Source of the DNA: Ginglymostoma cirratum
Taxonomy: Eukaryota
Length of the DNA stretch: 51,867 bases
Reading direction: 5' to 3'
NCBI GenBank assembly: GCA_024137785.1
Contig: JAHRHZ010000027.1
Span: forward strand, 226,368 to 278,234
Of this stretch, positions 9,648 to 35,833 are shown one piece after another (position 1 is the stretch's first letter; each line of letters starts with the position of its first letter). Below the pieces are notes generated by a model. It did no database searches. It was not told where the DNA came from and saw only the letters and a program-made list of their open reading frames with translations. The position numbers and the translations under genes are program-made.

Positions 9648-10200
9648 TAGTAAACCACATTGGTTCTGCATGTTGTGGGAATGGGGTCTTTAATCCTTGT
9701 GAGTGTTTGTCATAGATTGGCTGTGGGCTTGTGGCCCACCATGATTCATATGGTCTTCGGAGTCTTGATGTCAGTTCTGATATGTTCCTGATGTAGGGCA
9801 GTGTGGCCAGTGTGTTGTGGCGTACTGTGTGCTCCTGTTGTTGTCTGTTTAGTAGGCATCTGCGGGTGAAGTTGTGGGGATATCCGTTTATAGCGAAGAT
9901 TTTGTATAGGTGCTCTTCCCCTTTCCTGCACAGTGCCGGAGGGTTGCAGTGTGCTCTGGCCCATTTAAATAGTGTCCTAAAGCAGCTTTGTTTGTGGATG
10001 TTGGCGTGGTTGCTGTGAAAGTTGAGGATTGGATCAGTGTGGGTTGCTTCTCTGTACACTGAAGTTTGTAACTCCCGTTTGGTCTAACACTCATCTCTAA
10101 CATCCAGAAATGGACGTTGATTGTTGTTTTCTTCTTCTGTTGTTGATGAGTTGGTGGGTCCCTTCCAATTTGTTGTACGCATTTACTTTCCCATATTTCA
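9648..10200 (-). mobile_element. Penelope-like element fragment (RT C-terminus/linker), truncated at 9648
   Basis: YREATHTDPILNFHSNH..HK, NGYP, TLPYI motifs. Its duplicate at 43720-44700 continues through the GIY-YIG region and terminus. Confidence 0.85.
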
Positions 10201-10500
10201 ATGTATTAAAGGTCGCAGGTTTGGGAGGTACTGTCACATGCACTGCTACTTGGTGATTTCCTGCAATGCATCTTGTAGATGGTAGACATTGGTGCCACCA
10301 TGCATTGAGGAGTGAATGTTGAAGATGGTGGAAATGGTGCCAATTAACTGGGAAACTTTGTCATGGAGGGCACCAAGCTGCTTCAGTGTTGTGGGAGCTG
10401 CACCCATCCAGGGAAGTGGGGAATATTCCATCATACACCTGACATGGGTCTTCCATATTGTGGGCAGGCTCTGGGATGTCAGGAGGAGCGTTATCTCCTG
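10200..10500 (-). mobile_element. Decayed non-LTR retrotransposon 3' fragment
   Basis: MEYSPLPWMGAAPTTLKQL motif; same family as 34180-34730 and the duplicate at 44700-45000. Confidence 0.7.
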
Positions 10501-11320
10501 TGACCAATCTGTGTGGAGGAAGTATCTATCACTGCAACTGCTGGATGCCTAGGTTTTGGAGCTGGAGTGATGCCTGAGGACACCGTGGACCATCCATGAG
10601 ACTATCAGTATTGCGGATAGCCGCGTAAGAGAGATGGTCCCTCTGCAGCCTGAGACTGTAGAGACAGGGAGGGAATAGGTGGCCAGCAGTATGAAAAAGC
10701 AAATTGCGCTGGGGTATCGGGGGAAGAGACTGGGCCTGAGGGTATGGGGGCTAAATCAGCCCAGTGGTGCGCAGACTTGTCCATTCTCTCTGCTCCTACC
10801 CCCTACCCCACCCACACTAGCATCGTCCGATTCCCATTTCGAAGTCACGTCTGTTCTCCGCACATGTACAGTGTGGACTTTGCACATGATGGAACAAGTG
10901 GAGGATCTGGAACTGTGTGCATGCACGTTCTTGAATGAGTGCACACTCACATTTGTCCTGCATTTCTACTGTCAGCACAGGCTGCCTTAGTTTGTTTATT
11001 GCTGACAGACATATTTTTCAGCAGAATTAGGAACTTATGCTTTTAGCAACGGACAGGAAATAAGACCTCTCAGGGTGACTAACACCCGGCATGATGCCAA
11101 TAACCACATCTGCAGACCAAGTAACACGCTACTGGCAGCAATTCTCCACGAGAAAACAAACAGGCAGGTGTCGAGCTGTGCTTTCTGTTGTAAGAATATC
11201 TGCAGCTAACAAGGAGCACTGGCATAACCAGTGAAGAAATGGTCAGATCTGACCCCTCTTCAGCAGGGATTTGAAAAGAGGAATTTTCAAAGGACTGGCT
11301 TGCTGCCATCTTCTCCCTCA

Positions 11321-11331
11321 CGGAAATTCCT
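11321..11331. promoter_or_regulatory. Possible NF-kB-like site about 100 bp upstream of the ATG
   Basis: CGGAAATTCCT (reverse AGGAATTTCC, one mismatch to GGGRNWYYCC). Also present in copy B, but that is expected from recent duplication. Confidence 0.25.
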
Positions 11332-11425
11332 CATTTGACTTTTATTGGAATCTTCTTTCCTTGAGATCACTCAGAGCTGGGTGAGTGATAACAAGCGCCG
11401 ACCTAAACATTGCAAGGAAAAGAAA

Positions 11426-11462
11426 ATGTGGAGCCTGATTCTACTCATTTATTTGGTGCCCG
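11426..11462 (+). CDS. Copy A exon 1: signal peptide MWSLILLIYLVP
   Basis: AAAATG start, hydrophobic stretch, phase-1 donor G|GTGAGT. Confidence 0.85.
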
Positions 11463-14368
11463 GTGAGTGACAGCACAAGCTGGATATTTTGGACAGTCTG
11501 TATTGGCTTACGCCTCGTGTACCTGCTATTCAACCGTGATGTTTAAATAGTCAGGGACACGCATAGGCACAGAATACTCAGGAAAAATGATTGGGTGAAG
11601 TCTTGCATCTATTTTATCTAAACTACTTCATCTCAGAAATATTTACCAATATGCAGTAACGTATATTGTTCATGGTTAATTTTAAATAGAGGTTCTCATT
11701 TAGTTTGTCTCAAGAGCCACCAACAAATTGGAAGAAATGTAACAGTAACACAATAGATTTGTGAAAAGTGAGCCTTTGCATGCATTTGCTATCCAATGGA
11801 AACTGAATGTTGCAGCGGTAATAACATCTCTAAGAGGGCATTCCCTGAGTTTTCAATTGTTTTTGCTCTTTCAAGAGCAGCTGTTGAAATATTGAGGCTC
11901 TTTCAATATCAATGCTCCTCGATGACACACATTTTACGCACAGTGCTCCATCAAGAAGGAATCTTTTCCTACCATTCTTTAGCTCCAAAGAAGTAAATTT
12001 GTCATTTTTGCATCCACTCCAAAGTAATCTTCTGAATTTAGCTTCAGTGAAATTTTTGATGCATAACATTCATGGAGGAACCTCAGAAATAGCAGAAGAA
12101 TTCAGCTCTTTGACCCCTTCAACAATGTGCCATCACTCAAAAACATTAAAGTTCCCTCAACACTACTTGCCTGAACAAGACCCATATCTCTGAACAAAAA
12201 ACATTCACTCACAGTTACACTGAATATACTTAAAGCTTGATTGTCACTCAATGGTTGGGAACCTTTCAAATTCTCTAACCAAGAGAGGCAAAGTTTCTCC
12301 TCAACTTCTTCCAAATGCCTGACTCCCATTTTTGAGACTGTGATACTGTGCTCCAGAATCTCCAGCCCTGTGAAATATATGTCCGACATGGGTCTAATCA
12401 AGCCCCCTGGGCTCTTTATATGTTTCAATGAGATCAACACTCATTCCTTTAATTCCTAGGGAAAATAGAACTGATCAGAGAATAATAGAATCATAGACGT
12501 CTAGAGCAAAGAAAAAGACCCTTTATACCATCGATCCTGCACCACTATATAAATAATTTTCCTTCAATTCCTTCCAAACTTCCTGATCTTACTTCAAGTC
12601 TACATCGTCTTCTACATCTGTTCCTCCATAATTTTATACATTTCAATCATGTCCCCTCTCAATCGCCATTGTACCAAGCAAACACACCTAATTTATCCAA
12701 TCTCTCGTCTTCAATAAATCTCACGTCTAAATTCAAACCTAAGGTGATGTATAGTCTACCGTCTAACTATTGGTGCAAAAAGTAGCAATAACTTTGGTTT
12801 GGGAGATGACGATGTAGGATCGGTTTGGATGGAGATGAGGAATAATTTGGATGAAGTGATCCCTTGTGGGAGTGATTTACAAATCCCCGAACACTTGCCA
12901 TGATGTAAGGGGCATTTAAGAAGAAATGAATGGCTGCTTGTGATAAAGGGATAGCAATAACTGTGAGTAATTTTTAACCTGTTTGATGAGGGGTTAGTTG
13001 AATATTTTTGAGACAGTCTCTTACAGCGACACATTCTCGAACCGACCAGATAGCTGGTATTTGGTATTGTCTGAATAGCAGTGACCACAATCTGATTGAA
13101 TTTTATATCACGTTTGAAAGGTAAAGGTATTGTTCAATTATATGGACATGATAGCTCAGCTTTCTGAAGTGAACTGGAATATAAGGTTCGCAAATAGATC
13201 AGTAATGAAGCTGTGACAGACACTGTCAATAATATTTCACAATACTGAGAATAAGGAGATGAGCACAAAAAATTCCAAATGGAGGACTTACCTTACCATG
13301 GTTCACTAAAGAAGTTGAGGAATGCATCAAACTACAGGAAAAAGAATATCAATGCACTAAGATGAATGGCACGTCAGATGACCTGTAACAATAGTGAGAA
13401 TGCCAGAAAATGACAAAAAGTTTAAACAGGACAAATCAATAAAAACATAAAAACAAGCAAGTCAAAAACTCTACAAATGGATAGCAAGAGTTTGAGCATC
13501 TATCTGGAAAGGAAAAGAATAAGTAAAGTGAGTGTTGGTGTCAAGAGATTGAGAATGCAGAGTTAATAGTAGATTGATGCTCTGAGCTCACCTTACGCAA
13601 CGATGAGAAAAGTCAAATCCCAGACTGAAATCTGATTTGGTAGATTTTCTTAACTTTTGGCTAATGCAGTGTTTAATCACTCAAGCAGAATCAGAGAAGA
13701 TTACTGAACTTTTAAAAGAATAGAACAAAAGTTTATGACAAAGAAAATGAAATTGAAAATGAAGGCAATCTATCCGGATTTACAGTTTCAAACAATCCTA
13801 AGACACACTGCAAAACAAAGTTTTCAACTGTTTTCCAACATTGTCAATTTACAGTGACTCAAGTCCAGAGAAATCTGCCATCCTGCTGACGTAAAGTAGC
13901 AGGCTAATACAATGTCATCCTGGACTGAATATAAAAGTGAGATCATTGTGCTTCAATGATGCAGCACATTGTCCCTGAGGGGTCACCATTTTAAAATTAG
14001 GGATCACCCTTTTTTAATACAGAGGTGGAGGAATTTTTTTCTCCAGAGAACTGGCTACCATAGAAGGAGATTGAGGTGGATAGATACTTGTGAGACAAGA
14101 ATCAAAGGTTATCGGGATAAATGGGAATGTGGGATTGGAACACAAATATAACGGCTGTAATCTTCTGGGTGGCTGAGCGGGTTTCAAGAACTGAATGCTC
14201 TGCTTCTGCTTTGTATTTCTAGACTATATCCTCAATTTATATGGTCATATGTTTGTTACAGGTATAGTGCAGCGTCTCCTGTGGGTGGAGGGGTAAAACT
14301 TATTAAGATGTATTTATTTGTATTAAGAGCTCAGATCTTTCTCAATTTCTGAAAAGTTGTCTCCCCAG

Positions 14369-14689
14369 CATCATCACATGTGTGAACAAAGGAGAAAGTA
14401 ACAGGAATTGTGGGAAGATCAATCACCATACCTTGTGAATATGACACATCGTTCAAGGACAACATGAAATACTGGTGTCATGGTTGGAGTACCTACTGCT
14501 CATATTTGGTGAGAACGACTGATCCAGATGGACAGCGAGAGAGAATGTCAATCCAAGATAACAAGACACAAGGAGTATTTGTTGTTACCATGGAGCATCT
14601 TCGCACGGAAGATGCAGGATGGTACAGCTGTGGTATTGATCGAGCAGGTAGAGATGAATTATCTGCTGTGGATCTCAAAGTATCACACG
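14369..14689 (+). CDS. Copy A exon 2: V-set Ig domain 1 (CD300/pIgR-like), contains TGA
   Basis: ctccccag acceptor; G.SITIPCEY..KYWCHGWSTYC...EDAGWYSCGI; extra C-C' Cys pair; donor G|GTACAT; 321 nt, phase 1-1. Confidence 0.93.
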
Positions 14690-15508
14690 GTACATTTTAC
14701 ATTTTTTTAATTAATATCAACTGAACTATCTGTTCAATGTTTTATCTGGGACGAACCATAAAACCTTTAACACCCCAATGTGCTGCAGCAGAGCTGACAC
14801 TTGTTGGTAGGAAGATATGTACAGTGGAGGCCATTCAGCCTATTGAGCCTGTCCCACTAATTAATGCAATTATGGCTGATTGAACACTTCAGTGCCAGTA
14901 AGACACAGTATGCTCTTAACTCTTCATACAAATAATAATAAAAAAATTATCGAGTCCTACTTTAAATATACACCATAAAATCTGTTGAACCTATGATGCA
15001 CTCCTTTCAAGGCAATAATATCTTTCCTGAAGTAAGCTGATCGAAACTGCACAAAATACTTCAGGTTTGGTTTAACCAAGATCCTAAACGATAACTGAAG
15101 CATGAATTCTCAATACTCAAATCCTCATGTAATAAAGGCTAACATGCCTGCATCTTTCCAAATAACTTGCTGCACCTGCATGTTCGCCTTCAATATCTTA
15201 TTGACCAGGGTACCCAAGTCTCTTTATACATCTGTACTTTCCAACATCTCACCATTTAAAAAAATACTCTGCACGTGGGTTCCTCTGACCAAAGTGGATA
15301 ACCTTACATTTATCCACAATATATTCCATCAGCCAAATCCTTGCCCAATCATTAAGCCTGTCCAAATCCTGATGAAGATGTTTTGCATCTTCCTCACAAC
15401 ATATAATCCTCATTTTCTTGTATCATCTGCAAATTTGGAAATGATAAATTTAGTCCCCATCTCTAAATCGTTGTTATTTTCGGAAACAAACTTGGGATCA
15501 GGTACTGA

Positions 15509-15627
15509 GATAACAAGGTGTAGAGCTGGATTAACACAGCAGGCCAAGCAGCATCAGAGGAGCAGGAAGGCTGACGTTTCAGGCCTAGACCTTTCTTCAG
15601 AAAAAAAAGAATTAATACAGAGATGGA
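15509..15627 (-). mobile_element. Short Penelope terminal-repeat element with 14-bp TSD
   Basis: Flanked by GGATCAG(G/A)TACTGA at 15495-15508 and 15628-15641. Confidence 0.75.
15573..15600 (-). ncRNA. Minimal type I hammerhead ribozyme core (intact, PLE family 1)
   Basis: Reverse strand CTGAAGA-A-AGGTC-TA-GGCCT-GAAAC-GTC. Confidence 0.65.
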
Positions 15628-17524
15628 GGATCAGATACTGATCCTTGCCTAACCCTATTAGACACAGTCTGCCAACATGGGAATGCTTCATTTATTCCTC
15701 TTGTCTGTTTTCTGTGTGTTCACCAATCATCAACCCATGCCATTATTTTATGTCCTACACCATGTGCTTTAACTTTGCAAATCAAACTCCTGTGGGGTCC
15801 TTCTCAAAACCCTTCTCGAAATCCAAATGTACTCCATCCTTTAACTTCCATTTCTCAATTTTGTGAGTAACATCCTGAAAAGCTCCAACAAGTTGGTAAA
15901 ACACAATTATCCATTCACTACTTCGTGGCGACTGTACACCATCAAATCATTTTTATCCAAGTGTCCATTTGTCACTTCCTTTATGATAGAGTCTGGCACT
16001 TTCCTTACTACTGATGTGAGCTGATGGATCAGTGGTTCACAAATTTTCCCCTTTCTGTTTCCATAAACAGTGGGGTGACATTTGCAAGCTTCCAGTCTGC
16101 AGAAATCATTCTAGAGCATCTGGGATTTGGGAACATAATTACCAATGCATCATTTACCTCTACTGACACATTTGCCGACAATTTAGAATGTAGACTATCA
16201 GCTGTTGGGGATTTATCAATTCTATGTATTTCTCCAGCACAACCTGCTTACCAATGCTAATTTCCTTCAACTCCTTGTTCTCCCTTCTCACTGGGATCTC
16301 TATTTCAGGTACTTTTCTTGTATTTTCCTCAGCAAAACAGTCACAAATTACACATTTAGCTTCTCTGCCATTTATCCAGTTCCTCATCTAAATTCGCCAA
16401 ACTCTGCTTTTAATGGGTCCTCATTTGCCTCTGCCAATTTTTTTGTTTAAATACCTGCAGAAGCTTTTCAATTTCATGTTTTCTTTGTTAGATTGCATTT
16501 GTGTTCCATTCTTTCCCTTTCAGTCTTAAGTTCCTCCTTTGTGGAATGCTTAAAAAATTCCAAGCCTCAAATTCTAATGATATTGGCCACTTTAAAACCT
16601 TATTGTTTTTATCCCAAAAGTCTTTAACTTCATTTTGTCAGCTAAAGTTGATCTGTCTTTTTTCGAGTGGAATATTTTCTTGCTGTTAGGCATGAAACAG
16701 GTCTTTATGACTGTCCGTTGCCTGTATACTATCCTGCCTTTTAATGTACTTCCCCAAACCGGCTCTGCCACTTTGTGCCTCTCTCTTTCATAACTTTCCT
16801 GATTCAACCTTCCTTCAGATTGAGATACCTCACTTCCAGCCATAAGGTATAATTCTATCAAATTTCTGATCCTTCATCCCAGAACCTTAAGTTCTTAGTT
16901 TCTTTAGTTTCTTCAAAAGAACCTTTAAAAGGTTCTTTTAAAGAAACATCATTAATTAGCTCTTTTTCATGACATTACGTTATACCCAAAATAACCCGTC
17001 GTCTGGTCAGCTCTTCAACATGCTGCTCGACAAAACCAATCATGGTCATGGTAGCTTGCAGTATCATAAGTTTTGGGAACAACACGGCAGTTCTCAGGAT
17101 TTGTGGAAGCCAGCCAATCCTGCTGACATCCATTTTAGAGACATAGAGTCTGACAGCACGCAAAGGGGCCCTTTGTCCCATCACGCCTGTGCTGGTCAGC
17201 AAGTATCTATCTGTCATGCTCCCATGTTCCTGCACTTCACCTGGAAGTCTTGTGGGGTCTGGCATTTCAAGTGATCATTTGAAAAGATTCTAAAAGTTTT
17301 CTGCAGGATCACTGTCTGTGGGTGAGATAATTCCATGGGAGGGGGATTTATCAATCACAGACTGTTAACTCTCAATCTATGCAATGTTAAGCTGATATTT
17401 GGATAGCAACTGTGGAGATTCTAAAATGAAAAGATTTGAATACAAGATAGAAATGATGAAATTTGCAGAGTATTCCTTGTTTAGATCCTCAGTCAGTATC
17501 TCACCATTTGCTTCTTTCTCACAG

Positions 17525-17848
17525 AACCTGTGTCTGTTCCGATCATTCAATTTTTATCACCATCAAATATCTTGTGCTTTGAGAACTCAGTTTCTGTCTC
17601 CTGTGAGTCTGCCCAGGGATCTCTTCCCATTCAGTACACATGGTATGAAAAGACCCCGTCTAAAGACTCAAAGATCTCTCACACCAGTAAACTGGACCTA
17701 CATTGTCAATCCTTCAAACAGCAACAGCATCGATATTACTGCACAGCGTCAAATACTCAGGGAGAAAAGCTCAGTGAAATGGTTACAGTGTCAATCATCC
17801 ACAGATCAGAGAGCAACTGCAGTTTTGTGGCACAAATTGGGAGCCGTG
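17525..17848 (+). CDS. Copy A exon 3: C2-type Ig domain 1 (FCRL-like)
   Basis: tttctcacag acceptor; EPVSVP...SCESAQGSLPIQYTWY...YYCTASNTQGEKLSE; donor G|GTAAAT; 324 nt, phase 1-1. Confidence 0.93.
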
Positions 17849-18349
17849 GTAAATATTCGTTTAAGCTTCTTGAACTGTAGTTGTGTTTTTTCAATGAATG
17901 TCTGCATTAATCAGATACAAGATATCTTCTCCCTTGTGAATATGTTATTATCAAACCGAATGGCTTAATGTTCAAAAAGGAGTCAATTTAACGGCATATT
18001 CTTGAGTTAATAAAGGGTGAGACTGATTGTCACTAAACCTTTAAAATTCAGTGGCCTTCATCAGTGCCTCTCACTTTTGAACTGCTCTTCAGTGACCCTG
18101 AAATTGTGCTGTGTGACTACTTGCAAATCCTACATTAAGCTCCATTTTGGGCTTATTTTGTACAAATCCTATTGCTGGACAGATTTGACTGTTGCTGCCA
18201 AGCAACTCTTCAACTGAGTGCACACTGAAAGTTACATTTCTCAGAGAATGCTGTTTTCTCTGGTACAATTGGATGCACAGGAAATTGATTCCATCACACA
18301 CTGTATGAACAGATGTAGTGGAGAGATTCCTCTGTACTCAGTGGCAACT

Positions 18350-19085
18350 CAGAGAGTCATAACAGCACAGAAACAGACCCTTCGATACAACCAGTCTGTG
18401 ACGAGCATAATCCCAAACTAAACTAGTCCCACCTGCCTGCTCTTGGCCCATATCCTTCCAAACCTTTCCTATTCATACACTTCTCCAAATGTCTTTTAAA
18501 CGTTGTAATTGTACCCACATTCATCACTTCCTCATTCCACATGCGAACCACCCTCTGCGTAAAATATTTGTCTCTCCTGTCTTTTCTAAATCTCTCTCCT
18601 CTCACCATAACAATGTATTCCCTCATCTTAAGTCTCTCATCCTCGGGAAAAGATAATTACCATTAACTCTAGCTGTACCTCTCATTATTTTATGAACTTC
18701 CACAATCGTCTCAACCTCCTACAGTCCAGAGAAACAAGTCCCAGCCTTTCCAGCCTTTCTTTATAACGCAAACCTTCCATACCCAGCAACAAACTGGTAA
18801 ATTTCTTCTGAACCCTCTCCAGCTTGATAATATCCTTCTTTTAATTCAGTGACGAGAACTGGATACAACATCCAGAAGAGTCCTCACCAATGTCCCGTAC
18901 AGCGTCAACATGACCTCCCCTCCCAACTCCTGTACTCAAAGGACTGAGTAATGAAGGCAAGCGTGCCAAAAGCCTTTCTAACCACCCTGTCTATATGTGA
19001 CCCAAACTTCAAAGAATTATGTACCTGCCCCCCTCGGTCCCATTTGATCAAATCCCTTTGTAATCTCAGAAAAGCTTCTTCACCG
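18350..19085 (-). mobile_element. CR1-type LINE 3' fragment
   Basis: ORF 18423-18626 (FTQRVVRMWN, TFKRHLE) and CR1-like 3' UTR; host sequence resumes near 19820. Confidence 0.85.
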
Positions 19086-19094
19086 TCTTCTTTT

Positions 19095-19410
19095 TATTCA
19101 TTCATGGGATGTGGGTGTCAGGGGCTGGGCCACCATTTATGACCCATCCCTAATTTCCCACAGGGCAGTTAAGAGTCAATGACATTGCTTTGAATCTGGA
19201 GTCACACGTAGGCCAGCCCAGGTAAGGACAGCAGTTTCCTTCCCTAAAGGGCATTAGCGAACCAGATGGTTTTTTCCGAAAATTGGCAATGGGTTCTTGG
19301 GCATCATTGGACTCTTAATTCTAGATATTTACTGAATTCAAATTCTACCATCTACCACGGCAGGATTTGATCCCAAATCCCCAGAATGTTACCTGGGTGT
19401 CCGGATTACA
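19095..19410 (-). mobile_element. tRNA-derived SINE, reverse copy (family not assigned)
   Basis: Reverse complement of 19430-19775 (tctggagtcacacgtaggcc vs ggcctacatgtgactccaga). Confidence 0.75.
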
Positions 19411-19429
19411 AATGGCACAGGATGGGAGG

Positions 19430-19775
19430 CAATGACCTTGTGGTATTATCACTAGACTGTTAATCAAGAGACCTTGACAACACTCTGGGGATCTGGGTTC
19501 AAATCCTGCTAGGGCAGATGGCAGATGGTGGAATTTGAATTCAATGAAATATCTGGAATTAAGAATCTAATAATGACCATATATCAATTGTTCGGAAAAA
19601 CCCACCCGGTTCACTGATGTCCTTCAGGGAAGGAAAACTCCATCCTTACATGGACTGGCCTACATGTGACTCCAGACGCAGAGCACTGTGGTTGTCTCTG
19701 AACTTCCCTCTGGGTAATTAGGAATGGACAATAAATGCTGTCTAGCCAGCGACATCTTATCTTGCACTTGAATTA
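19430..19775 (+). mobile_element. tRNA-derived SINE, forward copy
   Basis: B-box GGTTCAAATCC at ~19496-19506 and aataaatgc 3' region. Confidence 0.75.
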
Positions 19776-20742
19776 TCAAAAAGTCCAGCAATAATATCAT
19801 GAGGCCATTCCCTCCCATCTGTGCCATCAATTTTGGTGCTGTCTGCAAACTTACTAATCATGCCCTCTGTATTCTCATCCAAATCATTTACATAAATGAC
19901 AAACAAATGAGGACCCAGAACTGATCCCTATGGAACACTGCTGGTCACAGGCCTCCAGTCCAGAAAGCAACCCTCCACCATTACTCTCTGTCTGCTGATA
20001 TTAAGGCCCATTATATATCCAATTGGCAAGCTCAACCTGAATCCTATGTGAACTAACTTTTCTAATTTGTCTACCATGTGGCACCTCATCAAAAGCTTTA
20101 ACAAAATGCAAATAAACATCTACTGCTCTGCAGTCTTTTTGGTAATTTCCTCAAAAAAATCAAGCAAGTTTGTGAGACACAATTATCCTTGCAGAAAACC
20201 ATACTGACGATCACCAATCAATTTTTGCTTCTTCAAATGTCCATACATTCTCTTTTTTTATAATCACCGCCAAAAATTTTCCTATAAATGAAGTTCAATT
20301 CACAGGTCTACAGTTCCACAGTTTCTCCTTACAACCTTTCTTAAACAAAGGTACAACATTAGCCACCCTCCAGTGATCAGGCACCTCACCTGTCGTTATC
20401 GATGATCAAATATTTCTGCAAGGAGTTTTGCAATTTCCTCCCTTACTTCCCACAACATTTTGGGATATATTACATCAGGTCCAGAGATTTAGCTACCTTC
20501 ATATTCTCTAAGACCTCCTGAACTTCCTCTTTTGTAATGTGAACTGTTTTTAAAACATCAAAAACATAAAACATTTCCTTCAACACATTTGACAAATTCC
20601 TCACTATCCGATCCTTAAACACTGTGGTAGTCCCAGTCAATGTTTGGAAATTTAAAATACCCCCATTTTTACAACCTTATTCTGTTTACATGTATCTGAG
20701 ATATCCCTACATATTTGTTTCTCAATTTCTCTCTTACTCAAA

Positions 20743-20995
20743 GTTTTTGAGTTCCTGCAGGCCTGGCACTCCAACCGGAACTGCATTAACAAACATGTAG
20801 AGCTGGACTCCATATACGAACCACTAAGAAACAAACTCGGAAATGATGCCATCGACCCCAGCAAACCGAGACACATAACTAACAGTGGGACAGAACACTG
20901 ACGCTTCACTGGAGGCGCACTGATGGTGTTACCTAGTATGGTGACGAAATGTTTGCAAACAAACTTACCAGCTCGGCGAGCAAGTCAACAATGGC
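20743..20995 (+). mobile_element. Penelope-like 3' terminal fragment (family 2), homologous to 305-550
   Basis: ttcctgcaggcctggcactc...aaacttaccagctc shared with the window start; hammerhead-like core at 20920-20953. Confidence 0.85.
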
Positions 20996-21259
20996 ATTCC
21001 CTCTTACTATTGGTGGGAGGGCCGATAGTGCAATCGCATCAAAGTGATCGTTCCTTTCTTATTTGTAATTTCTACCCATATATTTTCACTGAATGATTTT
21101 TCAGAAATATCTTCCCGAGTTACCGCAGTAATGTATTCCTTAAACAAAAACATTACCCCCACTTCGCCCCCCGTACCAATAAAACCCCCTTTCTTGCCTC
21201 CTTTCCTGTCCTTCCTATACAATCTCAAACCTGGAACATTGAGCTGCCAGTCTTGTTCA

Positions 21260-21650
21260 TCTCGAGCAGAGCGAGCGCGGACTGAGTCCTGGAAGCGAGT
21301 CACAGCCGGAGCACAGAGCGGGTGCAGATTGAGCCCAGGTCAGCCGGTGGGGGACGAGTCCGGGAGGGAGGACAGCAGATGGAGGCAGCGAAGCCTTGTG
21401 TTCTGAAGCCTGGTGGGGAAGGACTCAGTGAAAAGGAGGATAATTAGAGTACTTTATAGAAACCTTTTATTCTCATTCTGGACTTTTTAAACTTTGTATT
21501 CCCATGCCAGTCTTTTTTTCACTGTTTCAATTCTGTAACAATACTTGAACTATCTGCACCTCGGTATTCTGTACCGAAGATTGTGCCATGGTGCAACATT
21601 ACACACTTTTCACTGCAATCATTCGAGTGCACATGACAATAAACATTACT
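21260..21650 (+). mobile_element. Short non-autonomous retro-element nested in CR1 (family not assigned)
   Basis: GC-rich 5' part and LINE-like 3' end (...gcacatgacaataaa); interrupts continuous CR1 sequence. Confidence 0.5.
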
Positions 21651-22163
21651 GTACTTTATTCTCTCAGTCAAGTTTCTGTAATAGCTATGATGTCCCAATC
21701 CCATGTTTGTAAACATGCAGTTCATCAGCCTTACCTGTAAGACTCTTTGTAGTGTTGTTCTTCAGAGTTACTACATACTCTGGCTCTCCCTTGACTTTCT
21801 TTTCTCATTGACATGCTGCCCTCACATTCAGAGCCTGCTCCATCAATCCTTCCAGTGAGACTGCTCCTCAGAATTCCTCCACTCCCACTGTCTGTTAGTA
21901 TAAAGTCTCCCTTCATGGAGCGAGCAAATCTCCCTGCTAAGATATTTGTCCCCTTCCAGTTCAGCTTGGACCCATCCTTTTAAATCAGGTGTTTTCTATC
22001 TCAAAAGACATTCCAATTGTCCAGAAACCTGAATCCCTGAACAATACACCAGCTATTCAGCCGTTGGTTTATCTCCTCTATCCTTTTGTTCCTTCCCTTG
22101 TATGAAATGTACCTGATTGTATTGAGAGTTATTTTCTGTTTGAAGGACTCATTGTCTTTTCAG

Positions 22164-22472
22164 GTTCAACTGTAACGCCAGCAAAAAATAAAGTGACAGG
22201 AGTTTTGGGAAGAGCGATCACAATAGAATGTCACTATGACAAATGGTCACAATTATATGTGAAATTTTGGAGTCGCCAGTGCTCTGTTTTAGTAAAATCA
22301 AATGACCATCATGGACAGCAAGGAAGAATATCGATCATCGATAACAAGACACAAAATATATTTTCTGTTACAATGGAGGATCTTCGCTCAGATGATGCAG
22401 GATGGTACAGCTGTGGTATTGACCGATCTGGCCACATTTCAGTGTCTGCTGTCGAGCTACAAATATCTCACG
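22164..22472 (+). CDS. Copy A exon 4: V-set Ig domain 2 with 4-codon deletion
   Basis: tcttttcag acceptor; GRAITIECHY..KFW----SRQC...DDAGWYSCGI; donor G|GTATAT; 309 nt, phase 1-1. Confidence 0.93.
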
Positions 22473-22544
22473 GTATATTTCTCAGTGATATCGTTAATTA
22501 TTCTCTATTGAGATGTTTTATCGATGCTTTATCTGTGAGAGAAC

Positions 22545-23215
22545 ATAATCTCAAACTAGTCCCACCTGTTCCTGGTCCATATACCTCCAGATCGTTCCTG
22601 TTAATGTATCTAGCCAAATGCTTTTTAAACATTGTAATTGTACCCACATCCACCACTTCCTCAGGAAGTTCACTCCAGATGCGAACCACGCTCTGTCTAA
22701 AAATTTGCCTCTCCTGTCTTTTCTAACTCCCCCCCGCTCACCTTAAAAATGTGTCCCCTAGTCTTGAAATCCCTCACCCTCGGGAAAAGACAATTACCAT
22801 GAACTTGTCTGATCCTCATCATTTTACAAACTTCAATCAGGTCACCTCTCAACCTGCTACACTTCAGGGAAAAAAGTCCCAGTCTATCCAGCCTTTCTTC
22901 ACAACTCAAACCTTCCATGCCTGGCAACATCCTGGTAAATCTCTTCTGAACCCTCTCCAGCTTGGCAATATCCTTCCTATCACTGCGCAATCAGAACTGG
23001 ACACAATATTCCAGAAGAGGCCTCACCAATGTCCTGTACAACCTCAATATGACTTCCCAACTCCTGTACTCAAAGGACTGAGCAATGAAGACAAGTGTGC
23101 CAAACGCCTTTTTCACAACCCTGTCTCTATGTGATGCAAACTTTGAAGAATTATGTACCTGCACCCCAGGTCCCTCTGTTCTACAACACTACCCAAGGCC
23201 CTACAATTAATTGTA
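22545..23215 (-). mobile_element. CR1-type LINE 3' fragment
   Basis: KDIAKLERVQKRFTRMLPGMEGLS..LRGDLIEV, WSELPEEVV. Confidence 0.9.
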
Positions 23216-23893
23216 ACCTCTCAGATCTGAGCAAGTCCCCTGAAGAGGAAGAGCCAGGCTCCAGTCTGGGACAGGTTTTCAGTCCTGAGACAGACAGATC
23301 GGGCTCTCGGATGTGTTATAATCAGTTATTCTGAGACTTTTTCAGCAGATTTCCTGCCAACAACCTGTTTGCTGGTTTTAATCTAGCTCAGTGATATCAC
23401 TTTTGGGGAATGGCCATGCACTGTCTTTAGTAGAATATCACTCTGACCTCGATCGAACAGCAGATTGGATTATTACACATTACTTCATAGCACATTGCTT
23501 TATAACTAAGGCACACGATTGCCTCTTGCAAAACAATCTGGATCAAATTAGATTACGTACATTATAAATTCCGCTGATGTGAAGGACAATCACTGAAACA
23601 CTGCACATTCTGTGGTGATCACATGTGAACTTGTAGGACACAAGGAGAACCTGGTTAGCTCCTCCCATGAGTTGTCCTCAGAATGTATCTGGTCACCGAT
23701 GTGTTCTGATTACTCTCTTTACAGATAAAAGGGAAAATGTAACTCCACACCAATTCACTCCAATGGAACAGTCATCTAACTTCATAAACTCAGTTACTGA
23801 TTGCACTGAAGTGCTCATCTCAGTCAAATAAGCACATTTGAACATCTCACAGGCATCAAACTTCTTTAAGTCTAAAATAGGTTGCTGTAAAGT

Positions 23894-23980
23894 AAACCCT
23901 AACCCTAATGACAGCTCTAATCCTATCCCCAACCCTAATCCCAACCCCAAGCCCAACACTAACTCTCACCCTGACCCTAA
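23894..23980. repeat. Degenerate (CCCTAA)n telomere-like hexamer tract
   Basis: aaccctaaccctaa...aaccctaatcccaaccccaagcccaacactaactctcaccctgaccctaa, 6-bp period. Confidence 0.75.
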
Positions 23981-24620
23981 TATTGGGCAGCATTCAATTC
24001 AGTGAAAACATGAAACTCAAAATATTATGGCTTCAACATATTGAACCTGGGCACATTGAAGTAGCCAGTAAACCCGACACAAGATCCATTTATGCAGCAT
24101 TGCGAGGTTTCAGAACCCCAGAAACGCTAATTCTCATCTCCCTCTGAATTTTTGAGTTAAAATATTCTTTTCAGTTGCAGTCAAGTGGGACAAAGCACAT
24201 TTATACTCCCTGTATAAGGCCTGAAAAGTTGTAACAGATATCTGACAATTTATTCTCTTTTACTGCTCCATTTTAGTGTAAGGCTCTCTCCAACAGCTTT
24301 CCATTTGGGAATGAAACGATTAGCCAGCTAAAGGCTTGGAATCCGGCTATCAGCTACTGATAGAAAATATAGGCTCTGATTTCCACATTGACACATGCCC
24401 AGTGTCATTGCATTTGTCCTGATTTAGAGCCTTCCCGTGTTCTGTTATAATAGTAGACATGGGAATTCACATTACTGGGAGGCTGGAGAGACATGGACAG
24501 GTCGACACGTTTGGGATATTTGAACATACACACCCTGGATGAGATGTGGAAATGTTGGAAATAGGAACAGTGTTTAAATGCTGCTCAGGCAGTGTCTGAA
24601 TGTCTGCTTCTTTTCCACAG

Positions 24621-24947
24621 AACCTGTCTCTGTTCCTGTACTTAAATTTTTATCATCTCCACCAAATGCCTCATGTTCTGGAAGCTCATTGACAATCTCC
24701 TGTGAATCGGTCCACGGATCCCTCCCCATTCAGTACACATGGTATGAAAAGACCCTGTCTGAAGATTCAAAGATCTCTCACACCAGTAAACTGGATCTGC
24801 ATTGTCAATCCTTCACACAGCAACATCATCGATATTACTGCACAGCGTCAAATACTCAGGGAGAAGAATCCAGTGAAATTGTTAATGTTTCAGTCATCCA
24901 CAGATCAGAGGAGAACTGCAGTTATGTAGCACATATCAGCACCAGTG
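24621..24947 (+). CDS. Copy A exon 5: C2-type Ig domain 2 (FCRL-like)
   Basis: ttttccacag acceptor; EPVSVPVL...SCESVHGSLPIQYTWY...YYCTASN; donor G|GTAAGC; 327 nt, phase 1-1. Confidence 0.93.
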
Positions 24948-24980
24948 GTAAGCTATACTGTAAACAAACAATATAATTGC

Positions 24981-25080
24981 TGAGATAACAAGGTGTAGAG
25001 CTGGATGAGCACAGCAGGCCAAGCAGCATCAGAAGAGCAGGAAAGCTGATGTTTCAGTTCTGGACTCTTCTTCAGAAAAT
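24981..25080 (-). mobile_element. Short Penelope terminal-repeat element (family 1), degenerate hammerhead at 25048-25075
   Basis: gagataacaaggtgtagagctggatg...tgatgtttcagttctggactcttcttcagaaa. Confidence 0.8.
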
Positions 25081-25689
25081 TCAATATATCCATCAGTGGC
25101 ATGACGTTATGTTCCATGGTCATAGCACACAGTTACGTTATCCTCTACCCACAGAGGTAACAAATGACACGTGGAGGGTATTAGTCCTGGTCCTGCTGGT
25201 TCACAACTGGCCAACTTGTACAGATTCCGTCTTCTCCAGAATGGGATACACTGCCTCCAGAGTCTAAATCCTTCTCTCCCCACAATCAGGCAGCTGAGCC
25301 GCTCCTGGTGCCATGGATTTGGCTGTCACTACATTCTTCAGAGAACACATCTCCCCAGCAGTGTCCAAAAGGGAATGTCTATGGCAACAGGATACATTGC
25401 TGATTTGTCAAAGCAAAATCTTCCAGAAAGCTAGATGCGGGTTATATTCCTGCAGTCAGTCTGAAAAATTGCATCTGGGCAAATTTACAGTATCTGGTCT
25501 TTCAGTAGATCTGAGCAAGATCACTTAGTTGAATATTAAAAAGATTATAAAATATCCCAAAAATATGGATAACATTTGCAGACATTACAGTAACCCCTGA
25601 ACAGTAAAACGTGATTGCATTGACTGAGTCTAAAGCATTAACAGCCCTTTGTTGCTAAAGTTTCTTCACTCCTGCAATGCAGAAAATCA

Positions 25690-25950
25690 ATCTGTACAGC
25701 GCCAATTCCCACAGGCAGCAATGTGAAAATAACACGATAATTTACTTTTAATTGGGGGATAAATATTATTCAGGGCACTTGGAATACCTATACTCCTCTT
25801 CTTCAAGACAATGCCATGGGTCAAGCAGAGTTGGCAGATGTAGTCTCAGTTTAACATCTCATCGACGAAGGTAGCACTGCCAACACTGCAGCACTCCTTC
25901 ACCAACGCATTGAACCAATTGCATTCAGGTTTATGCTCAAGCCTTGGCCC
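25690..25950 (-). mobile_element. Old SINE relic (Deu-domain/SacSINE1-like)
   Basis: tctcagtttaacatctcatcgacgaaggtagcactgccaacactgcagcactcc resembles the reverse of the Deu-SINE core as recalled; needs a library search. Confidence 0.45.
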
Positions 25951-26242
25951 TGATGTAAGTAATTATAGGGGATGTCAGGATTGGAGTCCATTGATAGGCT
26001 CAAATAGGTAATGCTGTATTACCATCTGTAAGAAATGGGAAACAATTAGAAACTGCCATGAAAGATTAGTCACTGGCAGTTCAGAGTGGGATTGTTCTGG
26101 TAGTGGGGCTGTGGGGATGACACAGAGATTACACCTTCCAAATCCATTATATCAGCTAAAGCTTCCATTTGACAATGTTGCTGTTTTGGTTAACTAGAGT
26201 AAAAACGAGGTTAATCTGAAAGTTATTCATTTGTTTCAACAG

Positions 26243-26321
26243 GAGCTGATTACCGTTCTGAAACTTCATCAGTATCGGTGACAACTACAAATTCAAAAGT
26301 CATGCCTCAACTTGATATAAG
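26243..26321 (+). CDS. Copy A exon 6: Ser/Thr-rich stalk (GADYRSETSSVSVTTTNSKVMPQLDI)
   Basis: tttcaacag acceptor, AG|GTACAA donor; phase 1 in and phase 2 out, exactly bridging exon 5 to the TM exon. Confidence 0.75.
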
Positions 26322-26929
26322 GTACAATTATCACATCGTTAGGGTTTGACACCTTCCACATGAGTGATTAAATCCTCTTGAACAATGTCTTGTTAATCAT
26401 GAAGGAAATTATTTCTTATTTCTCAATGTAGATCCCAGAATGGAAATGGGGCCGGACTGACATCAGGCTGTAGCATTAGCTTCTTAACAAAGTGTGCTAT
26501 GTGCACTTATCAGTTTGGTGTGGAACTAATGGAAAAGTTGTTCTTATGTGGGTGAAAATGAGAAATTACATCAATAAATCTGCTCTGCCTTGGTGGTATC
26601 ACTTATGAGGAACATCTTGCAACTTTGGTCAAGTTTGCAGTGAGGAGGCCTTCTTCTTGATGGTATTCCCATTGAGGTGTGAAGAAATATCAGACACAGA
26701 ACACTGTAGGGGCACAGATAGAATCATAGAATCATACAACATGGAAACAGATTCTTAGATCCAACTCATCCACAGTGACCAGACAGCCCAATCTGACCCA
26801 GTCCCAATTGCCAGCAATTGGCCCATATCCCTACTAAACCCCACCTATTCATATACTCATCCAGATGCTTTTTAAATGCTGTTATGTATCACCTCACCCA
26901 AGTAAATCAAAATATAACATGAGTCCATA

Positions 26930-27620
26930 TTTGCCATGTTGGGATTGTTTAAAGACCTGCTGATGAGAGTTCAAGACTGGCATGTTTCAGTAAGGAGGAA
27001 GGATAAGATTGACAAAGTAAGGGACCCTTGCATCATGAGGGAGGTTGTGAATTTATTCAAAGGGAAAAAGAAGCTTATGTAAGGTCTAGCATTCTAAAAT
27101 TTGACAGGGTCCATGTGGAATATAAAGAAAGGAGGAAAGAACTCTAGGAGGGTATTAGGAGTGTAAGAATGGTCCATAGAATGACCTTGGACAGTAGGGT
27201 TAAAGAGAATCCCAAGTCATTCTGTAGATTAGTTAAAAACAAGAGGATAAGTGGGGAGAAGTTAGGAATACTCAACGATAAAGGAGGGAGCTTCCGCTTC
27301 GAGGCAAAGAATGTGTGTTACATCCTAAATGAGCATTTTGCATCAGTATTCACTCAGGAAAAGGATATGGAGGATAGAGAGATTTGTGTTGAGCATGCTC
27401 ATAATCTAGGGCATTTTGAGATCAAGAAAGAAATGGTGTTGAATCTCTTGATGATTCCACTAAAGTGGGTAAGTCCCCAGGGCCTAACGGTATGTACTCC
27501 AGGTTATTGAGAGAAGCAAGAGAGGAAATTTCAAGGGCCTCGACCAAGATCTTTATATCCTCACTAGCCACTGAAGAGGGCCTGGAGAATAGCTAATGAT
27601 GTTCCTCTGTTCAAGACGTT
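26930..27620 (+). mobile_element. CR1-type LINE internal fragment
   Basis: RVKENPKSF...ILNEHFASVFTQE motif. Confidence 0.85.
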
Positions 27621-28209
27621 TTCAGAAGATGTCCTGTCACCAACCTATTTGCTGGTTGTCTGGCCTGCTGACACCATTTGACAAGATTGTGCACGTAATA
27701 TCTGGAGCTAGGATATCAGTTTGATCTTGTGTAAACAGCAGATAGGTAACCAATATGCCTCTAGCAGGTGAAATTATGAATTGCAATCTCAGACTAAAGG
27801 GAACGATGTCAGACGTTGAGAACTGAAGTGTTGAAGTTACAAGGACAGGCAAAGTGCAGATTTTAACAGATACACACATAGAACCTTCAAAGAACATCAT
27901 CTTAAATGGACAGCTGCTGGTCTCCATGCACACCTTTGACAAAGGGAATTTACCTGTGAAGCACTTTGAGTTTTCCTGAGTTTGTGGAATGTTTTGTATC
28001 AATGCGCATTATCATTCCAATTCAAAACAAACTCGAGATTAAAATATATCGAAGGCAATGATCTGAGCGCTCACTAGAGAAGGCCGCCCGATTCCTGCCT
28101 GCAACAAGAATCGTTAAAATAAAATATTCAGTAAATCCACTGCTGCTGAGTGACGATTCCTGAGTGAGATGATTTACTTCTGGAAGCAAAGTTGTCTTGT
28201 TGCAATTTT

Positions 28210-28545
28210 ATGGGTCCTCGGTGAGACCATAGCTGGAGTATTACGCACAGTATTGGTCACTTTCCCTGAGGAAAAATGCACTTGCCTTAGAGAGAGTGCA
28301 ACAAAGGTTCACCAAATGAATTCCTGGGATGGAAGGATTATCCTCTGAAGAAAGATTAAATAAACCAGGATTATATTCTCTTTAGTTTCAAAAAATCTCA
28401 TACAGACACACAAAGTATTTCTAGGGTTCAACAGGGTAGATGTGGGAAGATGTTACTAATGGCTGTTGGGTTTAGAACAAAAGAAAACAATCTTAGAATA
28501 AGGGGCAGGCCATTTCAGACAGAGATAAGGAGGAATATTTTCACT
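28210..28545 (+). mobile_element. CR1-type LINE 3' fragment (old)
   Basis: ggtgagaccatagctggagtatt...ttagagagagtgcaacaaaggttcacc (RP.LEY..LERVQ.RFT). Confidence 0.7.
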
Positions 28546-29391
28546 TCAACTTTGATATTGACTAACCATTATAAATTGATGCTGCTGTTTCTGTTAGCGT
28601 TGCATTGCAATAACAATAAATGAAGAGATAAATCAGAAAGGTTTATCAGCATGATGACGTTAGAAATTTCTTATTTCAGATGATAATTTATCAGGACAGT
28701 TGGGTTTACACAATGTTGTTAGTTTCCTAACAAAGCTGCGATTTTTGTTGATAGGAATTGAAAATAAGAATTCAGTGCTTTGTGTTTGCCACCTCTCAGA
28801 GGTTTTCATTATCCATGTTGCTCCTTCACAATTCACCAAATCCCATGGAGTTGTACTCGTCACACTTCAACAATCATTGATCCTGTGCTTTCTGCAGTAT
28901 CACTACCAGGGACATTACATTCTCTGTCATCTTCTCCTCCTCCGTTCTCTCACGTTATCCATTATTCCCAATCTGAGAGGGTGAAAGGCAGTCTGGTTCC
29001 AGCTGGTTAAGACTTACCTGTTAGAAGGTGCAAGGAGCAGTGTGCGATGATGTCATTCTCAGTTCCTCGCTCACTGAAGACACATCTCATCATTGTAATA
29101 TTGCACAGGCCGCAGTGCCTCCCGCAAATATCGAACGACGTCTATTAATCCTTGTGTATATCATTGTGCTGAGCATTACAGGGTGTGCTTCTCAAACTTG
29201 TTTCATTAATCTTCATTGAAAGATCAAAATAAACTAAACTGAAATTTGTTTTTCATGCTTAAGTCTCTTATTGTGCTATTTTCCTTTACTTTAACATATT
29301 GAGATGACAGTGCAAACAGGGAATAATTGTTTAAAACGTGAAGTAGTCTTGTTTCCATCAAATAATTTTGTGTGTCTTCCCTTTTACACAG

Positions 29392-29482
29392 TTACGTTGC
29401 CTGGAATATGATACGATGGGTGCTCTTCACTCTCCTTGTGATTTCAGCTGTTTCAGTTACATTACACACTCGAAAACATAAG
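29392..29482 (+). CDS. Copy A exon 7: transmembrane segment with charged Arg (SYVAWNMIRWVLFTLLVISAVSVTLHTRKHK)
   Basis: cttttacacag acceptor (phase 2), hydrophobic run followed by basic RKHK, AAG|GTGAGG donor. Confidence 0.85.
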
Positions 29483-30390
29483 GTGAGGATTACAGACTCT
29501 ATAAGAACCATTTTGAGCACTTTGCAAATACTCCATCAATTATATCCCACTCCATAGGTGTTTGGAAACAGGGAACACAGTTTCATTATAAGGGATAGTC
29601 CTTTTAAGGACCAGAAGAGGAGGAATTTCCTCACTCAGAGGGGGTCAGACTTTGAATTCTCTTCCCCTGAGGACGATAGAAGCTGAATCATTGAGAAAGT
29701 TTCAGACAGAAATTGCTAGAATTCCAGGTACTAGAATTTCTAGTGAAGTGAAAAGATACGGGGAAATTTCAGTGATATAATGTTTAAGTAACCGATCAAC
29801 CATGATGTAGTTAAATTGTGGATTCTGCTTGAGGGCAGAATGCCAGTCTCCTGGGTACATTTTCTGTGTTTCTTTGACCAGATTTCAAACACATTATTCA
29901 GAGATATTTTAAACAATATGAACCTTTCATTGCTGTCTGGATGAAACAATGTTATTTGCAGAGAGTATGAATTTTTTTTCAAAATGTGTGTAATTTCGAT
30001 AAAATAAAGTAGATTACTTGTGGGCAGTGTCTGGCTTCTTGATCCTTATTGAAGCAGCATCCATCCAGAAATGATTGGATCCCTTAATCCAGAATACCTC
30101 TCAATCAATCAATTTTCACTTTATCACTGAAAGGACCTATCACATAATGTCTGCAGTCCCTGTCATGACATCAAGATATTTAAAGCGCTTGAAGTTCATT
30201 GGAGTTATTTGCAGTTCTTTAGATGCTCCATTCAGACATCATAAGACTCAATGCAGAATAATTTTGACAAATGACTGAAAGTCTCCCAAAATCAATGAAC
30301 GTTCTTCTAACAGAATGTATCCAATCTATTTTTATGACTTCAATATGTTCCATCTACTTTAAATTTCCTGGATTTATTTGCATTATGCAG

Positions 30391-30441
30391 GCGTCATGGC
30401 GGAGAATTTGTAAGCAGCTGAATAGCCAGACAATCTGTTGA
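30391..30441 (+). CDS. Copy A putative last exon: short cytoplasmic tail ASWRRICKQLNSQTIC*
   Basis: tttgcattatgcag acceptor, phase 0, AATAAA ~250 nt downstream. Alternative acceptors exist (~30461, ~31505). Confidence 0.5.
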   Translation, partial: ASWRRICKQLNSQTIC

Positions 30442-35180: not shown

Positions 35181-35805
35181 AAGGGTCAGACTGGCAGAAA
35201 GAAAAATCAAGCAGCATGCCTCAATTTGCCCACGGAAGCAACATGTCTCTCCCTGGCCTTACACTTATCCCCAGAACAACAAAGGTATCTACATCAAGCT
35301 CTGACTTATTGATTTCAGCTCCACCTTCAACACTATAATTCCAACAAATCCATCTCCAAACTCCAGGACATAGGTCCCCCTTCCCCCCAGCTGTAACTGG
35401 ATACTTGACTTCCTGCCCATCAGACCACAGTCAGTAACGATAGGCAACATCACATCCCCCACAGTATTCCTCAACACCGGAGCACAGCAAGGCTGAGTAC
35501 ACAGCCCCCTATTGCAATCCTTACGCACACACAACTGCGTGACCAAATTGCAGACCAACTCCAATTACAGGTTTGCTGACAATACGACCATTCTACATGA
35601 GATCTCAAAGGGAACAAGGCAGAGAACAGGAAGGAGGCAACGTTCTTAATGTCTTGGTGTAAAGACAAAATAATGTCTTCAACAAAGACAACAAATGGAT
35701 GGAACTGAGATAGTCGGCACTGCCGATGCAGGAGAATCTGAGATAAAACGTTGTGGAGCTGGATGAAAACAACAGGCCAAGCAGCATCGGAGGAGCAGGA
35801 AAGTT

Positions 35806-35833
35806 GATGTTTCGGGTCGAGACCCTTCTTCAG
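35806..35833 (-). ncRNA. Minimal hammerhead core in the inverted PLE terminus (helix III variant)
   Basis: Reverse CTGAAGA-A-GGGTC-TC-GACCC-GAAAC-ATC. Confidence 0.6.

Follow-up and report, generated by a model that had tools for sequence, protein, structure and literature searches.

A V-C2-V-C2 receptor gene of Ginglymostoma cirratum as a probable shark member of the MDIR family

Introduction

To which receptor family does a shark gene belong whose predicted ectodomain alternates V domains of the CD300/pIgR type with C2 domains of the FCRL type? This question is raised by a stretch of 51,867 nucleotides of Ginglymostoma cirratum (assembly GCA_024137785.1, contig JAHRHZ010000027.1, positions 226,368 to 278,234 of the forward strand), hereafter the window, in which an earlier note, made from the sequence alone, had joined eight exons between positions 11426 and 30441 into a mosaic immune receptor and had suspected a poorly described multigene family of cartilaginous fish combining modules that are separate in mammals. 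According to reviews, PIGR, FCRL and classical Fc receptors are absent from cartilaginous fish, which raises for their authors the question of how antibody is transported or used for opsonisation in sharks (PMC4016189; PMC13337447). Our analysis indicates that this shark gene very likely belongs to the modular domain immune-type receptor (MDIR) family and has its four-domain V-C2-V-C2 form. Judged from the sequences, the architecture is already known from skate MDIR5, and what the window holds is a new member of a little-studied family and not a new layout.

Results

Gene Structure

The eight exons lie on the plus strand and their order encodes a leader, V1, C2-1, V2, C2-2, a stalk, a transmembrane (TM) segment and a tail. 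All introns run GT..AG and the phases are compatible (0>1 for the leader, 1>1 for each of the four Ig-domain exons, and 1>2, 2>0 and 0>stop for the last three); the spliced model has a length of 1539 nt, i.e., 513 codons. The exons are as follows.

11426-11462, plus strand: exon 1, leader (MWSLILLIYLVP), 37 nt, phase 0>1, donor GTGAGT; near-identical in a duplicate (copy B, see below)
14369-14689, plus strand: exon 2, V1, 321 nt, phase 1>1; V-set with the canonical and the extra C-C' cysteines
17525-17848, plus strand: exon 3, C2-1, 324 nt, phase 1>1; FCRL-type C2
22164-22472, plus strand: exon 4, V2, 309 nt, phase 1>1; V-set
24621-24947, plus strand: exon 5, C2-2, 327 nt, phase 1>1; FCRL-type C2
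26243-26321, plus strand: exon 6, stalk, 79 nt, phase 1>2; Ser/Thr-rich
29392-29482, plus strand: exon 7, TM segment, 91 nt, phase 2>0; YVAWNMIRWVLFTLLVISAVSVTL followed by HTRKHK, with an Arg near the outer end
30391-30441, plus strand: putative exon 8, tail, 51 nt; 16 codons without tyrosine, then TGA

With respect to the eight exons said to splice in frame, the location, the GT..AG boundaries, the phases and the order of the domains were all recovered; an open reading frame was not, due to a TGA within V1 (see below), and the tail exon lacks support from homology. The tail exon was placed from splice consensus, frame and an AATAAA at 30688 only. The models of two relatives, Hemiscyllium P0167 and Chiloscyllium P0155, stop directly after the TM segment. 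The smaller exons upstream of the tail do find counterparts: the leader exon is 71% identical over 14 amino acids to the N-terminus of whale-shark P0177, the stalk exon is 53-54% identical to Hemiscyllium P0156 and P0167 in tblastn, and by the same method the TM exon matches Chiloscyllium P0155 (70.6%, E 2.4e-9), Hemiscyllium P0167 (62.9%) and skate MDIR5 (41%, E 4.5e-5). A tblastn search with ten family members detected no further immunoglobulin (Ig) exons and no tail with an immunoreceptor tyrosine-based inhibitory motif (ITIM) elsewhere in the window.

Relatives and Family Assignment

Queries were single exons of the window or database proteins throughout. When the C2-2 exon was used as a HMMER query against 1.8 billion representative proteins, 230 proteins were obtained at E<=1e-10. 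Mapping the four domains of the window gene onto the 150 best relatives revealed mixed V and C2 layouts in 28 of them, ranging from VC, VCC, VCV, VVC, VCVC and VCVCVC up to an 11-domain VCCVCVCVCVC. The relatives come from sharks (Hemiscyllium, Chiloscyllium, Rhincodon, Mustelus, Scyliorhinus, Carcharodon, Cetorhinus, Heptranchias and Heterodontus), from skates and rays (Leucoraja, Amblyraja, Rhinoraja, Hemitrygon, Hypanus, Mobula, Pristis and Narcine) and from a chimaera (Callorhinchus), and carry automatic names such as “polymeric immunoglobulin receptor-like,” “Fc receptor-like protein 5,” “CMRF35-like” and “uncharacterized.” The closest full-length relative is Hemiscyllium P0003, a protein of 526 amino acids with the layout V-C-V-C, which is 72-81% identical domain by domain. 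With P0003 as the query, 117 homologues were found at E<=1e-10 in approximately 20 elasmobranch species, and those of any given species sit on a single chromosome-sized contig.

The family to which these proteins belong is indicated by entries from the clearnose skate: P0003 matches MDIR3 (E 4.5e-146), MDIR5 (E 1.8e-122) and MDIR2 (E 4.5e-59), which have the layouts V-V-C-V-C, V-C-V-C and V-C, respectively. The C2-2 exon itself is 63% identical to domain 4 of MDIR5 (E 2e-40) and 52% to its other C2 domain, and V1 is 46% (E 4e-26) and 43% identical to the two V domains of MDIR5. Furthermore, a cDNA-derived entry of Callorhinchus is named “modular domain immune-type receptor 2.” Reportedly, MDIRs possess one to six ectodomains drawn from four subfamilies, with similarity to CMRF-35-like molecules, pIgR, TREMs, NKp44 and FcR homologues, and are said to occur in activating, inhibitory and motif-less forms. 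The paper that described the family in the clearnose skate (Cannon et al., Immunogenetics 2006, 58:362) appears in PMC3031540 as its reference 35. What had been suspected of a poorly described multigene family proved right in substance as regards domain types, spread and copy number, with two tandem copies within the window and a large clustered family beyond it. Its novelty did not stand: a full-length match to a characterised family was found in the homologues MDIR3, MDIR5 and MDIR2, of which MDIR5 has the same V-C2-V-C2 order.

As a separate observation, Rhinoraja longicauda P0012 (760 amino acids) has a TRIM-type RING/B-box N-terminus fused to a C-V-C MDIR, and probably represents merged neighbour genes.

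V and C2 Domains

Both V exons are recognised by the Pfam V-set model (V1 with 45.6 bits and V2 with 47.1 bits, at a cut-off of 26 bits). Among solved structures in the PDB, V1 is best matched by CD300LF/CLM-1 (66.8 bits, E 1.5e-17), followed by CD300A, CD300 “molecule 6,” individual pIgR domains, NKp44, TLT-1 and TREM2; all five pIgR domains align with V1, with 18-38 bits each (D5 38, D4 36 and D1 24-30). The CD300/TREM/pIgR signature that had been ascribed to the V domains is, therefore, correct for the domain type in view of both the Pfam and the PDB matches, but its extra C-C' disulfide cysteines (KYWC...C) occur in V1 only. V2 reads KFWS-RQC, without the first Cys of the extra disulfide and with a 4-codon deletion, an altered state that is common to Hemiscyllium, Rhincodon and Carcharodon at the same position; domain 3 of skate MDIR5 differs in this respect. 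Alignment of V1 with pIgR D1 also bore out the short, CD300-like complementarity-determining region 1 (CDR1) devoid of the pIgR D1 motif: it has two residues fewer than the CDR1 of pIgR D1 (two one-residue gaps) and is without the basic NRHTR stretch. The surrounding “DTS...KYWC” is kept in V1 as in pIgR D1.

The C2 exons match the Pfam models Ig_3, Ig_2 and ig at or near the cut-offs, and are 73% identical to each other in amino acids and 82% in nucleotides. The best PDB match of C2-2 is human FCRL5 (summed E 4e-43 over six repeated domains, best domain 36.5 bits), with FCRL4 (25-31 bits), SYG-2 (28 bits) and CD22 d6-d7 (28 bits) as runners-up. C2-2 aligns end to end with the six membrane-proximal FCRL5 repeats, sharing the motifs PVSxPVL, CExxxGSxPIxY and YYCTAxN. 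The Pfam Ig hits and FCRL5 as the top solved structure thus agree with the earlier comparison of these domains with the FCRL type, a label that rests on the ranking of PDB matches and would be the best available description. Outside the cartilaginous fish the nearest proteins, 24-35% identical, are mammalian FCRL5 and teleost proteins that go under the names “CD22-like,” “sialoadhesin-like” and “hemicentin-like.” In our tree, which included no CD22, LITR or PECAM references, the MDIR C2 domains form one clade (support 100) apart from the domains of squirrel FCRL5 (100). Positions 1 and 3 of the ectodomain are V-set, so the all-C2 layout of FCRL is not matched.

Each C2 domain also contains three cysteines beyond the canonical pair (NxSC, LHCQ and NCS), which are kept in shark and skate MDIRs except for NxSC in domain 2 of MDIR5 and domain 3 of MDIR3. 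This pattern suggests an additional disulfide and perhaps one unpaired Cys.

Domain Trees and Age of the Layout

Quick maximum-likelihood trees were constructed for the domains, with support from the Shimodaira-Hasegawa-like approximate likelihood ratio test (SH-aLRT; also the support quoted above). V1 of the window groups with domain 1 of Rhincodon and Hemiscyllium (SH-aLRT 98) and is 77-79% identical to domain 1 of Rhincodon; V2 groups with domain 3 (99) and C2-1 with domain 2 (97) of the same genera, and C2-2 pairs with domain 4 of Hemiscyllium only (85). Since domains of the same position group together, the four-domain gene is older than the divergence of the carpet sharks. The split between V1 and V2 is common to lamniform sharks as well. 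The domains of the catshark, of Heptranchias and of batoids cluster gene by gene, which suggests independent duplication or homogenisation. Judged by identity (77-85%) and by place in the trees, the whale shark is the nearest of the annotated species to the window gene's shark.

The V-C2 layout was also observed in “pIgR-like” P0140 of the caecilian Rhinatrema bivittatum (XP_029428703.1, 300 amino acids) and in “MDIR2” P0268 of Callorhinchus milii (AFK11143.1), whose C2 domains are 42% and 49% identical, respectively, to the C2 exons of the window. As a module, V-C2 may be older than the elasmobranchs, or than the cartilaginous fish.

Transcripts

Reads of four runs of the same species were mapped on 22100-26400, a region covering three of the seven junctions. 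The join from C2-2 to the stalk (24947|26243, GT..AG) was present in runs X8, X1 and X2, with two reads in X8, a poly-A RNA-seq run, and one contig each in X1 and X2; the contig of X2 spans it with zero differences at a depth of 130. The junction of V2 with C2-2 is seen in loose ends of X2 contigs: those reaching 22472 run on into the initial 17 letters of C2-2, and on the reverse side those beginning at 24620 have the final 12 letters of V2 in front of them. The junction of C2-1 with V2 is represented by an X1 contig that joins the end of C2-1 (AATTGGGAGCCGT, then G) to 22163/4. V2 itself is covered from 22163 to 22373 by an X2 contig with 0 differences at a depth of 187, and the depth of X2 is approximately 70-670 on exons and 0-4 in unique intron, as expected for RNA. 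The V and C2 exons are spliced into common transcripts. Separate transcripts for the two exon types, which the earlier note had named as an outcome that would refute its reading, were not what the data revealed: C2-1, V2, C2-2 and the stalk are joined in reads or contigs.

Just 3' of the C2-2 donor, at 24980-25047, a core of ~65 nt reaches a depth of ~1000x in the poly-A RNA of X8. Of the reads on this core 99% run into unlike sequence, and some of the joints are on opposite strands. It is without an Rfam match and looks like the core of a very high-copy repeat (short interspersed nuclear element-like).

In-Frame Stop and Tandem Duplicate

The V1 exon, read from its only good acceptor, CCCCAG|CA (14368/14369), gives SSHV*TKEKVTG, and this stop has to be considered together with a second copy of the 5' part of the gene. 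The features concerned are listed below.

14383-14385, plus strand: in-frame TGA in the V1 exon, codon 18 of the precursor; TGG in copy B, Trp in most orthologues
45927-45963, plus strand: leader exon of copy B, nearly identical to the leader of the eight-exon gene (copy A)
51099-51419, plus strand: V1 exon of copy B, with an intact TGG at 51113-51115; nearly identical to V1 of copy A

With a TGA at codon 18, the eight exons of copy A therefore give no open frame. At the same position Hemiscyllium and Chiloscyllium read ...LWTNEKVTG, the skate ...LWAKKEV, and the whale shark has Gly. The only in-phase alternative acceptor, the AG at 14397-14398, would bypass the TGA, but its use is unlikely given the purine-rich tract upstream of it and the loss of the conserved end of the signal peptide. 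A search with the V1 exon for transcript fragments spanning this codon, confined to proteins of 0.55-1.75 times the query length, gave no match, a blank that carries no weight for or against the TGA. Copy B results from a tandem segmental duplication, in which 9648-15137 equals 44150-51867 at 95-98% identity; the duplicated segment carries the promoter region, the leader and the V1 exon, and the repeat unit is ~34.5 kb. Copy B, 34.5 kb downstream, leaves the end of the window after V1. Copy A is probably a transcribed null allele or young pseudogene, an estimate made because single-base errors are rare in modern assemblies, and copy B would then be the functional copy.

Intron 1 of copy B contains, within 47650-49881, an open reading frame (ORF) for the reverse transcriptase of a long interspersed nuclear element (LINE) on the minus strand (48109-49143; RVT_1, E 1.9e-31). 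Copy A is without this LINE at the matching place (~13151), which points to an insertion or a deletion after the duplication.

Transmembrane Segment and Tail

The TM exon contains an arginine approximately seven residues in, where NMIR is followed by 16 hydrophobic residues. Because only these 16 follow, the TM helix must take in the Arg in its outer part. The Arg-Trp pair is kept in the orthologues and in MDIR5. None of the candidate tails of the window gene contains a tyrosine; relatives with long, Tyr-rich tails are Carcharodon P0172, skate MDIR2 and skate MDIR3. An Arg in the outer third of the TM helix, within NxxR, together with a short tail is the geometry of activating FcR-gamma-coupled receptors such as FcalphaRI, LILRA and OSCAR, and activating CD300 members use Lys or Glu in this segment.

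Other Features of the Window

An Rfam scan of the window returned no RNA family, and among eight other ORFs of the window scanned with Pfam only the LINE reverse transcriptase was recognised. Copies of one interspersed repeat, 65-78% identical, occur in two introns and upstream of the gene (22532-23251, 18395-19041 and, on the minus strand, 2681-3308), where read depth is high and variable. The region 36000-40000 is GC-rich (49-55% GC versus ~40% elsewhere) and contains repeats in both inverted and direct orientation: 35741-36395 pairs with 38351-37718 (92%), and 35736-36065 with 40976-40647. Its ORFs, including a GIY-YIG-like “LLYIGETKRRLGDRIAEH” stretch, resemble retroelement fragments and have no Pfam match.

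Discussion

The protein encoded by an intact version of this gene would be a type I membrane receptor with two V-C2 modules, a Ser/Thr-rich stalk, an Arg-bearing TM segment and a very short cytoplasmic end. Recognition of the ligand would proceed via the V domains, for which lipid or Ig may be proposed as candidates by analogy with related receptors. As the receptor has no signalling motif of its own, it would signal through pairing of the TM Arg with an acidic residue of an adaptor carrying an ITAM (immunoreceptor tyrosine-based activation motif). By analogy, such pairing with an acidic-TM ITAM adaptor may tentatively be put forward as the most likely signalling route, ahead of a non-signalling or co-receptor role, which we consider rather unlikely. 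The literature was also searched for ITAM adaptors of cartilaginous fish, with no usable result.

Several observations do not sit easily with the picture drawn so far. The Asn of “NxxR” in the TM segment is not conserved, since the orthologues read DVIR, SILR and KVGR. MDIR5 is said to be without activating or inhibitory motifs and, if this is right, the original authors did not count the TM Arg as a charge. For the tail exon at 30391-30441 no homologue was matched in tblastn with family members. As to the transcripts, it is a guess that runs X1 and X2 represent RNA, and in X8 the depth on exons is very low (~0.5x) with only two junction reads. Finally, the TGA of copy A could instead be an assembly error or a polymorphism.

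The assignment to the MDIR family has to be weighed against other explanations of the same layout. The proposal of an undescribed mosaic family, distinct from every characterised one, is understandable given that the relatives are automatically called “pIgR-like,” “FCRL5” or “uncharacterized,” and such a family would be easy to overlook when reviews give PIGR and FCRL as absent from cartilaginous fish (PMC4016189; PMC13337447). However, skate MDIR2, MDIR3 and MDIR5 and the MDIR2 of Callorhinchus are clear homologues with the same module order and the family was named in 2006, which renders this proposal very improbable. Even less credit can be given to a prediction artefact, in which V-only (CD300-like) and C2-only (FCRL-like) genes are interleaved or the exons are never joined: the layout is unusual and reads covered just three of the seven junctions, yet C2-1, V2, C2-2 and the stalk are linked in reads or contigs, the Ig exons are all of phase 1-1, on one strand and in a consistent order, and the skate MDIR entries and many RefSeq models share this exon order.

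Compatible with membership in the MDIR family, the gene could also encode the Fc or polymeric Ig receptor of cartilaginous fish, binding IgM, IgW or IgNAR. Its domain types are those of the two Ig-receptor lineages in bony vertebrates, sharks are reported to be without the classical FcR, FCRL and PIGR genes (PMC4016189; PMC13337447), so that this function has no gene assigned to it, and the “DTS...KYWC” around CDR1 of V1 is that of pIgR D1. Against this, in a domain-by-domain comparison CD300LF, which binds lipids, is a far better match for V1 (66.8 bits) than pIgR D1 is (24-30 bits), the CDR1 of V1 falls short of that of pIgR D1 by two residues and has no basic “NRHTR,” and the short tail holds no sorting or transcytosis signal, so that an Ig-receptor function is considered quite unlikely. 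The same low standing applies to the wider idea that (V-C2)n MDIRs are the missing Ig receptors and preserve an ancestral state, with the pIgR/CD300-type V and the FCRL-type C2 modules in one gene, from before the two lineages split in bony vertebrates, an idea we regard as doubtful; if true, the caecilian V-C2 relative would be a relic of this one-gene state.

MDIRs have both domain types, and they form a large family in each of the shark and ray genomes sampled. The literature searched contains almost no follow-up since 2006, with a single paper that names the family. The assignment would supply the correct name for dozens of genes mislabelled “pIgR-like” or “FCRL5,” which are candidates for the binding of Ig or lipid. 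Copy A adds little when taken alone, being an orthologue of predicted carpet-shark genes and bearing a stop codon.

Comparison with Known Receptors

Among the closest known counterparts of the window gene is MDIR5 of the clearnose skate, Rostroraja (Raja) eglanteria (P0200, 501 amino acids). It has the layout V-C2-V-C2 (V1 43-46% and C2-2 52-63% identical), the V motif VGRxITIxC.Y...KYWC...DxGWYxCGI, the C2 motif PVSVPxL...SCESxxGSLPIxYTWYEKT...HHxYYCTASN, and a TM segment that is homologous, includes the same Arg-Trp and is followed by a short tail. Apart from being a skate and not a shark gene, MDIR5 differs in that its domain 3 keeps the first Cys of the extra disulfide and the four residues lost from the shark V2, its tail sequence is unrelated, and the premature stop is found in shark copy A. 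Closer in sequence are the carpet-shark genes, i.e., Rhincodon typus “pIgR-like” P0177, Hemiscyllium ocellatum P0003 (“FCRL5”) and P0156 (“pIgR-like”), and Chiloscyllium P0151 and P0155, which are position-specific orthologues with 72-85% domain identity and the same stalk and TM segment. Their names, however, are automatic and conflicting, no TM segment is seen in Hemiscyllium P0003 or P0156, and G. cirratum is not itself one of the annotated species.

Judging by its predicted architecture, the gene is not a CD300, pIgR or FCRL gene, since each of these fails on this point. CD300 (CD300LF/CLM-1, PDB 1zox and 6e47) provides the best match of V1, including the extra C-C' disulfide and the short CDR1, but consists of one V domain and no C2, whereas the shark gene has two V domains alternating with two C2 domains. 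pIgR (PDB 7jg2 and 5d4k) has V domains of the same subtype as V1 in a V-only ectodomain followed by a long sorting tail, whereas the shark gene interposes C2 domains and has a tail of at most 22 residues after the TM segment. FCRL5 (PDB 9loc) is ~30% identical, and FCRL ectodomains are without V domains and have tails with ITIM or ITAM-like tyrosines. The carp SITR (PMC3031540) likewise has a V/C2-type domain joined to a V domain that is CD300/MDIR-like, but is a soluble teleost protein with its two domains in the opposite order.

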